64,000 nt of DNA, taken from Blastocystis sp. Blastoise (taxonomy: Eukaryota > Protista > Bigyra: Opalinata). The DNA lies in assembly GCA_039096225.1 (NCBI GenBank), contig JBBPEB010000033.1, forward strand, positions 1,199,475 through 1,263,474. Direction: 5' to 3'. The position numbers and the translations under genes were made by a program. Numbering within the stretch: the stretch's first letter is position 1; each line of letters opens with the position of its first letter. Below the pieces are notes generated by a model. That model had not been told where the DNA came from and ran no database searches. It saw only the letters and a program-made list of their open reading frames with translations. Shown in pieces: positions 27,954 through 31,562 of the stretch.

Positions 27954-30900
27954 TTATATTTCGTTATAATAGGGACTTATACGAATAAAAGAAAAGCCAT
28001 CTTTTTCATAAGCTCTATATATATGTATTTATATATATAATATATTATATATGATAATATATGCAAAATGATAAAAATATTTATAATATAAATAGAGAAA
28101 TAAATACTGTTTCATTTCTTCCATTTTTTCTTCAGAACAAGTACCAACAATGGCGCCACCAGAACCCGGGAACTTAGCAGCACCAGAGTGTTGACTAGCA
28201 ATCTATAGAAATAATAATAAATAATAAAACTAATGATAAATATAATAATAAAAACATAATAATATCTTGGTTAATAATAATAAAAAATATTATAATAATA
28301 AAAATAATAATAAATATGAAAATGACTAAACAATAGAAATTATTATATATATATATATATATATATATATATATATATATATATATATATATATACTTCA
28401 ACCATATGAATATATTCAGGTTTAATAACTTTATCTCCAAATACCTTACGACGTAATTGGAAGTTCTTCGAAAAAATATGTTTCACTTCTTCATTATCGT
28501 GGTTATTTAAAGCTACTACTGCGTCATCTGTATATTGAGCAAATCTATATATTTATATAGTAAGTATAGAATATAGGTAATGAGAATATATATAAATATA
28601 TATATATATACTCTCTCATAGCAGCATCAATTTCTTTATCACCATTTAACCAACGGTGTTTTACTTCTGAATGTACCTTACCAGACTATATAAATAATAA
28701 TAATAATAATAATAATAATAATAATAATAATAATAATAATAATAATAATAATATATATATATATACATCTTTAGGTTGGTCAACATATGCCAAGAAAAGA
28801 GGAGGAAGAAGTTTAGCATCAAGATTCTTATAATAACCGTGGTTATCTTTCTCCATTAATTCACGATCAAAATTCATATAAACTAAACCTTCATATATTT
28901 GAACAACTCTATCTTGAAGTCCCGCGGTAATTCCTAATTCTTCAGTTTCAACTTCTAAACACCAATTGGGTTGATCATATTTAGGGAATTGTTCTTCAGT
29001 AACATCATAGAAAGCTAAAAGTGCTTTAAGAACAGCAGTAACAATAGCAGAAGAACCAGCTAAACCTACTTGGCGGGGAATGTTGGTATCATAACTATAT
29101 AATAATAGTATCATTTATATAATATAAAAAAAAATAAATAATAATAAAAATATAAAAAAAAAATAATAAACATAAAAATAATAATATAACTACTACTACT
29201 ATAAATATATATATATATACCTCATAGTGAATTTCTTTTCATGTAAAGGTATGTTATGATTAGAACAATACTCATAAAAACGTTTACATGAAGCCATTAA
29301 TAATCTCATACCACCATAATATCCTTCTTTCATGCTATTTGCATATAAATGATCGAGACCATCAAATTCCATTGGATCATTTCTATATATATATATATAT
29401 ATATATATATATATATTATATTATATATATACAAAGGATGAGGAGTTAATTTTAATGTATCACTTTCTATTATATGAACCTATATATATATATTAACAAT
29501 AAATATATTAATAAATATAATAATACTATATACTTCAGCATAGAAATTCTTAATAGTAAGAGCGAGAGTCTTTCCAAAGAAACCATCAGAAGGATTACCG
29601 ACTAAACCAACACGTGCGTAAGAACGTTCTAAGAAGGATAAAGTGAATGGAATAAATATTTAATTTAAATAACATATAAAGAATAGCATAAATATAGATA
29701 CAATAAATATATATATATATACTTGTTATTTCTTTCTTTTGAGATGCTAATCTTTCTAATGCTCTATGAGCGATATCATGTCTATATTGCATTCCTTCAA
29801 ATGATATTTTAGAAACACCTTCATATGCTTTCTTAACGGCTGCTTCAATATTATTGGCTACTCCTGTAACACAAAGAACACGACCTCCACTCGTTAATAA
29901 ATGACCCTCAGTATCTTTCTTAGTACCACTGTGGAACACAATCATGTCTGAATTAGAAGATACTGATTCTACTCCTTCAATAACCTTTCCTTTTTCATAT
30001 TTACCGGGATAACCTTTAGAGGCACAAACAACAGTAACAGCACTAGAAGGCTTCCAAGAGATCTATATATATATAAATATTAATATTAATATAAAAAAAT
30101 AAAAATAAAAATAAATGAAATATTAAATAGTAATATATATACCTTGATATCCTTTAAATTGCCTTCACAACATGCCTTCATAATAGTATATAAATCACTA
30201 TCGAGAAGAGAAAGAATAACTTGTGTTTCAGGATCACCAAAACGACAGTTATATTCAAGAACCTTAATTCCCGTGGGAGTAAGCATTAAACCAGCATATA
30301 AAACACCTTGATAAACACTTCCTTCTTTCTTAAGACCTTCAATACATTTTGTAAGAACAATATCTTTAATATCATCGATTTCCGCGGGAGTGAGACAAGG
30401 AGCAGGACAATAAGCACCCATACCTCTATATAATAATAATAATAATAATAATAAACATAATAATAATAATAATAATAATAATAATAATAATAACAATATA
30501 TATATATATACCCAGTATTAGGACCCATATCATGGTCGAATATACGTTTATGATCTTGAGCAGGAGGCATGACAGCAATAGAAGTACCATCAGTAAAACA
30601 AAGAAGACTGCATTCCTCTCCTTCCTATATATATAGATATATAATAATAATAATAATAATAATAATAATAATAATAATAATAATAATAATAATAATAATA
30701 ATAATAATAATAATAATAATAATAATAATAATAATAATAATAATAATAATAATAATAACGATAATAATATAAAAAGATATATATATATACAAGTCTTTCT
30801 TCAATAACAACTTCACAACCAGCATCACCAAATTCCTTATCAAGCATAATCTCCTATATATATATATATAAACAAAACAAAACAAAAAAAGCAAAAAAAT

Positions 30901-31562
30901 AAAAAAAATAATAAATAATAATAATAATAAAAAACAATAACAATACATTTAAAGCTTCAATTTCTTCATTCTTTTCAGGTAAAAGGACACCTTTACCAGC
31001 AGCAAGGCCAGAAGCCTTAATAACAACCTTATAATCACATGATTTTAAATATTCAATTGCTTTATTATAATCAGTAAATGTCTCATATTTAGCAGTAGGA
31101 ATATCATATTTCTTCATAAGATTCTTTGAAAATGCTTTAGAACCTTCGATTTCAGCAGCTTGTTGACAAGGACCAAAACTATAATTTATCATTTATATAA
31201 GCATTGAAAAGAAAAACAAAATATTATTTTTTATATAACATATCAAAATCATTAATAAAACGAAAAATATGAATTAGACTCTCATACCATAAGATATCAT
31301 TACCAACAAGTTTATCCCCTAAGCCTGCACAAAGTGGAATTTCAGGGCCAACAGCGACAAGTTTGATATTATTTTCTTTACAGAAAGCAATGATTTCGTC
31401 ATGTTTGCTTTCAGAAATGGGAACATTAGAAACTTTATTAAGAGAAGCAGTACCACCATTACCAGGTGCTACAAAGACGTGACTGACTTGCTCACTCTGA
31501 GAGAGCTTCCAAGCGATAGCATTTTCACGACCACCTCCACCAATTACAAGTACATTAGCCAT
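27954..31562 (-). CDS. Fusion protein: phosphoribosylamine-glycine ligase (GAR synthetase, PurD) + GHMP-family glucuronokinase
   Basis: PurD motifs [61 protein letters not shown]; intron 29629-29722 joins in frame to [21 protein letters not shown]...GYYGG...[16 protein letters not shown]...AGLQDRVVQ...SGKVHS...AKFPGSGGA; TAA at 27954-27956. Confidence 0.85.
30640..30760 (-). repeat. (ATT)n microsatellite in a PurD-domain intron
   Basis: Direct reading of the sequence. Confidence 0.95.

Follow-up and report, generated by a model that had tools for sequence, protein, structure and literature searches.

A PurD (GAR synthetase) domain joined in frame to a glucuronokinase-family kinase in Blastocystis sp. 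Blastoise

The window analysed here, a 64,000-nucleotide stretch of the genome of Blastocystis sp. Blastoise (33.3 Mb in 34 contigs; GC content of the window ~23%), contains on its minus strand a 771-aa open frame that reads from an ATG at 31562 to the end of the stop codon at 27954 and consists of 14 exons separated by 13 GT-AG introns (see Table 1). Amino acids 1-426 represent a PurD protein (GAR synthetase) and amino acids ~434-771 a GHMP kinase of the glucuronokinase family: Pfam searches with single exons recovered GARS_N, GARS_A and GARS_C in exons 1-6 and GHMP_kinases_N in exon 10. The gene model is identical at 771/771 positions to the GenBank protein KAK8791159.1 (WA158_005790, Blastocystis sp. 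Blastoise), which was returned by a profile search and is deposited under the name "hypothetical protein"; the extent of the gene (27954-31562) and the single polypeptide with PurD and glucuronokinase that had been proposed in an earlier note on this DNA are thus exact. A repeat is present at 30641-30758 within the gene. The Blastocystis end motif TGTTTGTT was considered and is absent; the gene terminates at an encoded TAA.

A large intron-rich gene starts on the plus strand at 32117, head to head with the fusion gene and ~550 bp from the PurD ATG; it may encode a TOR kinase, which it resembles, but Pfam searches with two of its exons gave no match. On the other side, an RRS1 ribosome-biogenesis gene (27000-27620, plus strand) is positioned tail to tail with the fusion gene, and a tRNA synthetase gene with a WHEP domain, of the glycyl type judging by its motifs, extends from 26191 downward on the minus strand.

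Table 1. Exons, junction intron and putative fusion point of the PurD-kinase gene (positions in the window).
Feature	Position	Strand	Basis
Exon 1: ATG, GARS N domain, aa 1-92, PRA-binding R12, E13	31288..31562	-	gene model, Pfam
Exon 2: GARS ATP-grasp with GLAAGKG loop, aa 92-169	30947..31178	-	gene model, Pfam
Exon 3: GARS ATP-grasp, aa 170-190	30791..30853	-	gene model
Exon 4: GARS A domain, QDHKR motif (D214, K216), tract near-identical to C16 paralogue	30512..30624	-	gene model, Pfam, paralogue comparison
Exon 5: GARS A domain, RFGDPE motif (R289, D292, E294), second near-identical tract	30143..30425	-	gene model, Pfam, paralogue comparison
Exon 6: GARS C domain (R383) and initial kinase residues	29723..30062	-	gene model, Pfam
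Putative fusion point, codons 427-433	29730..29750	-	PurD likeness ends at 426, kinase likeness by I434
94-nt phase-1 GT-AG intron within first strand of the kinase	29629..29722	-	spliced in RNA contigs, two studies
Exon 7: kinase motif I (R441, GNPSDG, D450)	29534..29628	-	gene model, family alignment
Exon 8: kinase	29433..29479	-	gene model, RNA contigs
Exon 9: kinase	29221..29382	-	gene model, RNA contigs
Exon 10: GHMP ATP-binding loop (P543-A553), AGLQDR (D598)	28767..29094	-	gene model, Pfam
Exon 11: kinase C-terminal domain	28612..28685	-	gene model
Exon 12: kinase C-terminal domain	28397..28544	-	gene model, RNA contigs
Exon 13: GHMP motif III (K730, GSGGA)	28108..28202	-	gene model, RNA contigs
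Exon 14: final 20 codons and TAA	27954..28014	-	gene model, deposited protein

The intron between exons 6 and 7 was confirmed in the gene model with the borders, phase and splice sites that the earlier note had given; the two enzymes are, however, not joined at this intron, as the same note had it. The resemblance to a PurD paralogue on C16 (see below) stops at codon 426, and Ile-434 and Thr-435, which are encoded upstream of the intron, match the first strand of the kinase (59% and 27% of relatives, respectively). The join was therefore placed within exon 6, some 3-9 codons upstream of the intron, and not at an exon-shuffling boundary. As had also been claimed, the kinase possesses no start codon of its own: the sole upstream intronic ATG (29689) is stopped by the TAA at 29662, 33 nt before the acceptor, and the next in-frame methionine of the kinase frame, Met-487, is located downstream of motif I.

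RNA contigs from two runs, each belonging to a different study, are spliced across the junction (29628/29723; 97 letters on its shorter side), which bears out the spliced reading frame originally deduced from the DNA. In run X1, a 1284-nt contig spans 30000-29723 and continues through exons 7-13, with the intron removed and all listed pieces matching the genome without mismatch; the RNA of X1 probably comes from the source isolate and is hence not independent evidence. Run X2, a poly(A) gut metatranscriptome from the other study, is spliced at the same join and differs at 18 of 654 aligned bases. All of the ten listed changes in the X2 junction contig were synonymous (7 in the PurD part, 3 in the kinase part), a result with a probability of 2.5e-7 under neutrality (22% synonymous sites), and the contig retains His-417, which is specific to the fused PurD copy. 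The fusion gene is expressed and under purifying selection in two strains. RNA contigs are blind to transcript ends, transcript levels and minor isoforms, and among those compared with exons 4-14 no single contig extends from ATG to stop; the junction contig begins only at codon ~343, since tracts common to the paralogue interrupt the assembly graph. Loose contig ends at 29690-29721 were not accepted as intron retention; they lie on an AT repeat. At window positions 30203-30209, one of two X2 contigs differs at three sites where both genome copies agree, which would fit gene conversion after the split of the strains.

Two PurD sequences are present in the genome, that of the fusion and one on C16 that opens an intact PurD-PurN-PurM gene (L004:7461-3000, G000 C16, minus strand), which is transcribed in run X1 (alleles visible at window 30012-30024). 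The domain order of the C16 gene, PurD-PurN-PurM versus PurD-PurM-PurN in animals, recurs in oomycetes and in a relative with 73% identity. The identity of the fused GARS to its C16 counterpart amounts to 92% (29 differences in the first 426 residues) and that to the relative P0391 to 76%; introns at codons 92 and 228 are common to both copies, those at codons 169, 190 and 322 are private to the fused PurD and that at codon 253 is private to C16. This comparison shows the fused PurD to be a duplicate of the first domain of the C16 PurD-PurN-PurM gene, with a sugar kinase standing where PurN and PurM would be. In the background on PurD given in the earlier note, this duplicate nature had been missed.

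The PurD half scored 546 bits with the TIGR00877 purD model (cut-off 288) and its GARS domains follow one another as N, A/B (ATP-grasp) and C. Of 148 conserved positions it retains 142, and its six departures also occur in the C16 copy. Of the residues that bind PRA, glycine and Mg-ATP, Arg-12, Glu-13, Asp-214, Lys-216, Arg-289, Asp-292, Glu-294 and Arg-383 are present; they were matched by motif spacing to the binding residues named for Cryptococcus GARS (PMC8449271), all seven of which have a counterpart. The half is predicted to form GAR from PRA, glycine and ATP. Between the two copies, dS is 0.47 and dN 0.035 (dN/dS about 0.07), and on the fused branch dN/dS remains at or below about 0.15 even if all amino-acid changes are assigned to it; by branch, eleven changes fall on the fused copy and seven on C16. 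The synonymous differences are clustered (permutation p 0.00085): CDS nt 598-683 contain none and nt 800-1058 contain six, and these near-identical tracts cover the QDHKR and RFGDPE motifs, while outside of them dS amounts to 1-1.5 and dN to 0.06-0.11. Such patchy divergence is the pattern expected of gene conversion acting on an older duplication, and conversion can make a relaxation of selection on the fused PurD go unnoticed. One tract in which the copies do not differ (CDS nt 952-1004) extends across the position of intron 30063-30142, which is missing from C16; either conversion via spliced RNA or a later intron gain would produce this arrangement.

The kinase is the only glucuronokinase-family member in the genome, and other GHMP models score far under the cut-off. 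Its closest characterised relative is the kinase domain of zebrafish GKUP (glucuronokinase with putative uridyl pyrophosphorylase), with which it shares 54% identity over 332 aa (E 2e-136) versus 46% with the one named plant sequence in the comparison set. Quick trees, which carry moderate weight as their labels were mostly derived from architecture, separate it together with the eukaryotic sequences by a branch of SH-aLRT 94; among these it has no settled position and does not join the two plant sequences. The designation "plant-type" is therefore not supported. A kinase acquired horizontally from bacteria would be expected to nest among prokaryotic stand-alone homologues; the top raw identity (56%) is to a protein from a bacterial contig. 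The GHMP motifs are kept (Arg-441/Asp-450, Pro-543 to Ala-553, Asp-598 and Lys-730 to Ala-737; PF00288 match), as are 87 of 92 family-conserved positions (relatives lose 3.5 on average); the departures D611N, G621N, V665I, M695F and G712K are all located outside the GHMP motifs. In consequence, the earlier statement that both halves retain their catalytic motifs holds. The kinase of zebrafish GKUP is specific for glucuronate (PMC3938481), and the Blastocystis kinase would, judging from its sequence, phosphorylate D-glucuronate at C1.

The zebrafish protein carries the same C-terminal GHMP kinase behind another enzyme domain: a nucleotidyltransferase-like domain of ~270 aa is found at its N-terminus, where the fusion instead has the 426-aa PurD (PMC3938481). 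Among relatives with a long N-terminal extension, 250 of 260 (many of them fish proteins) contain such a nucleotidyltransferase-like domain; no profile match to it was obtained in the N-terminal half, the window or the genome in a search that ran without a positive control. We infer that PurD replaced the nucleotidyltransferase domain in front of the kinase; the ancestral Blastocystis kinase could also have been stand-alone. Plant GlcAK belongs to the same family, contains the same motifs and has a separate UDP-sugar pyrophosphorylase as partner (PMC4002622), an arrangement that would also apply to the fusion; in contrast to the fusion kinase, which is 46% identical and does not group with plants, it is itself stand-alone. 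Another database protein (P0118, 786 aa) combines seven CCCH zinc fingers with a glucuronokinase domain and represents either an unusual partner or a gene-model fusion.

According to an AlphaFold2 model of the full fusion, both domains fold (mean pLDDT 81, pTM 0.59), the best Foldseek match being human GARS (2qk4; TM 0.92 by target). The modeled linker is very short, with a helix extending to residue 429 and a strand starting from 433 (pLDDT about 52 at 421-430); there is no confident interface, and the orientation of the domains is unreliable.

A stand-alone PurM gene with a new short N-terminus is located on C13 (L108:5089-3257, minus strand); along 1.8 kb of exons and introns, it matches the PurM portion of the C16 gene at 96% identity. 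The zinc-finger genes that follow PurM on C13 and C16 are paralogous (57% identical). This PurM is either an old duplicate with recent homogenisation or a recent copy. On a simple reading, the trifunctional gene was duplicated and one of the copies split, giving rise to PurM on C13 and PurD in the fusion. Beyond PurD, the window revealed no synteny with the C16 or C13 regions that would prove this reading or show a reciprocal swap. PurF is represented by two intact-looking genes and one degenerate copy (L105, L106 and L107; on C13, C25 and C14): the C14 copy starts with MSG, not MCG, and consequently is without the catalytic N-terminal cysteine, and its PRPP motif looks degenerate. For PurN, PurL, PurC and PurH, one copy each was found.

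Among the nucleotide-sugar enzymes, UDPGP-family genes were identified by Pfam match on C19 (L086) and C24, of which we take the former, by its motifs, to encode a UDP-sugar pyrophosphorylase-like enzyme and the latter to resemble UDP-GlcNAc pyrophosphorylase. The putative C19 enzyme would catalyze the step of the missing nucleotidyltransferase-like domain; literature searches found no paper tying UDP-sugar pyrophosphorylase to Blastocystis. A UDP-glucose dehydrogenase-family gene in the genome provides a second route to UDP-glucuronate. Neither myo-inositol oxygenase (in a search in which no control gave a signal) nor uronate isomerase (controls gave signals) was found in the genome; the glucuronate is therefore probably of external origin. 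A GH154/DUF2264 enzyme as source of free glucuronate was dropped from consideration, since the family has been reclassified and its members are proposed to be uronate dehydratases, not glucuronidases (PMC12269599). A DUF2264 (GH154-type) gene is present on C4 (L100-L101), ~33 kb from the UDP-glucose dehydrogenase-family gene.

In a whole-length search with the deposited protein (8000 candidates scored), a second fusion would score on both halves and rank near the top, but all other listed matches cover a single half. Likewise, PurD and the kinase were not found on one chain among the best 150 representatives or the matches listed in two profile searches (one of which was dominated by fish proteins), none of 80 metagenome loci of the kinase had PurD nearby or joined, and the matches listed included no orthologue of the kinase from Proteromonas or from any other Blastocystis. 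Paper searches found no description of a PurD-glucuronokinase fusion, and the main text of the genome paper that fits the assembly (PMC12129017) contains none of the terms "purine", "glucuron-" and "fusion". Both component families are well known and the fusion sequence is deposited, yet the architecture is undescribed as far as found; the novelty claimed in the earlier note has accordingly stood up among the listed matches and the papers searched.

The explanation that we consider fairly probable as a whole is that of a lineage-specific chimera with two independent activities on one chain, probably the product of a rearrangement that happened to be retained and not a functionally coupled enzyme. 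A duplicate of codons 1-426 of the PurD-PurN-PurM gene, comprising the whole GARS domain, would have been joined in frame to a glucuronokinase gene, with PurD taking the position of the nucleotidyltransferase-like domain of the relatives. One active site would convert phosphoribosylamine, glycine and ATP to GAR, on top of the activity of the trifunctional enzyme; the other would convert glucuronate and ATP to glucuronate-1-phosphate, from which the separate UDP-sugar pyrophosphorylase-like enzyme would form UDP-glucuronate; and occasional gene conversion would keep the two PurD copies alike. The fusion may persist because it contains the only glucuronokinase of the genome, which depends on the start codon and promoter of PurD, and because the extra PurD dose would be retained like the extra copies of PurF and PurM; this dosage pattern is incomplete, with PurN, PurL, PurC and PurH being single. 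Alternatively, PurD could be a mere passenger that provides promoter, start codon and a folded N-terminus and is kept intact by folding constraint and conversion from C16, its catalytic output being irrelevant. An intact, transcribed PurD-PurN-PurM gene is indeed available, the synonymous differences are clustered (p 0.00085), with the near-identical tracts covering the QDHKR and RFGDPE motifs, and the fused branch accumulated eleven changes compared with seven on the C16 branch. However, dN is only 0.06-0.11 outside the near-identical tracts in spite of a dS of 1-1.5, 7/7 listed changes of the second strain in the unconverted PurD part are synonymous, the fused PurD departs from C16 at none of the conserved positions, and a passenger of 426 residues could have been shortened; we therefore regard an idle PurD half as rather unlikely.

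The coupling of purine synthesis to uronic-acid salvage that had been suggested in the earlier note is less likely still: only ATP/ADP are common to the two reactions, with no shared intermediate, and a normal PurD-PurN-PurM gene exists elsewhere in the genome. The kinase would be tied into a purine assembly, or one domain would regulate the other (via ATP/ADP, glucuronate-1-phosphate or UDP-sugar status) and link dietary uronic acid to purines. Purifying selection on both halves, the very short modeled linker, due to which the domains must touch, and the post-transcriptional control of plant sugar-1-kinase activity (PMC4002622) would agree with such a link; the presence of the fusion in two close strains only, the model without a confident interface (pTM 0.59; pLDDT about 52 at 421-430) and the alternative route to UDP-glucuronate by way of the UDP-glucose dehydrogenase-family gene argue against it. 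It is similarly doubtful that glucuronate salvage and purine entry are mutually controlled in this fibre-fermenting gut protist, or that the kinase is attached through PurD to an assembly of purine enzymes. The other suggestion, a shift of the kinase to a sugar or a riboside entering purine metabolism, would draw on the five replacements at otherwise conserved positions (D611N, G621N, V665I, M695F, G712K), the negative searches for myo-inositol oxygenase and uronate isomerase and the unproven source of free glucuronate; it appears very improbable, as these replacements spare motifs I-III, 87/92 positions match a family with a glucuronate-only zebrafish member (PMC3938481) and, with PurF twice present, phosphoribosylamine need not come from elsewhere. 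Two separate genes, or an artefact of assembly or annotation, can hardly be maintained: a retained intron 6 would let the PurD frame read ~40 codons to a stop (ORF 29595-29945), so that a PurD-only isoform is possible, but the kinase has no start codon, the spliced junction with strain-specific differences in two studies excludes an assembly error, and the deposited annotation comprises the same 771 aa.

To our knowledge, the GARS fusions described so far unite enzymes of the same pathway and have been taken as evidence of pathway organisation. They comprise fungal GARS-AIRS, animal GARS-AIRS-GART and Francisella GARS-SAICAR synthetase (PMC8449271). GARS forms one domain of a multi-enzyme chain in these proteins and likewise in the Blastocystis fusion, but their partners belong to the purine pathway whereas the partner here is an enzyme of nucleotide-sugar salvage. 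The fusion unites unrelated pathways, and its parts can be traced within one genome: the PurD-PurN-PurM gene, the PurM duplicate and the PurD duplicate on a sugar kinase. It represents a clean natural test case for the question of whether enzyme fusions must have a functional reason to persist, and it cautions against reading function from fused domains. If the coupling were true, a GARS would be linked in structure and in function to an enzyme that does not belong to purine metabolism. For the biology of the organism, the gene suggests that tortoise Blastocystis salvages glucuronate and has part of its early purine pathway in duplicate.
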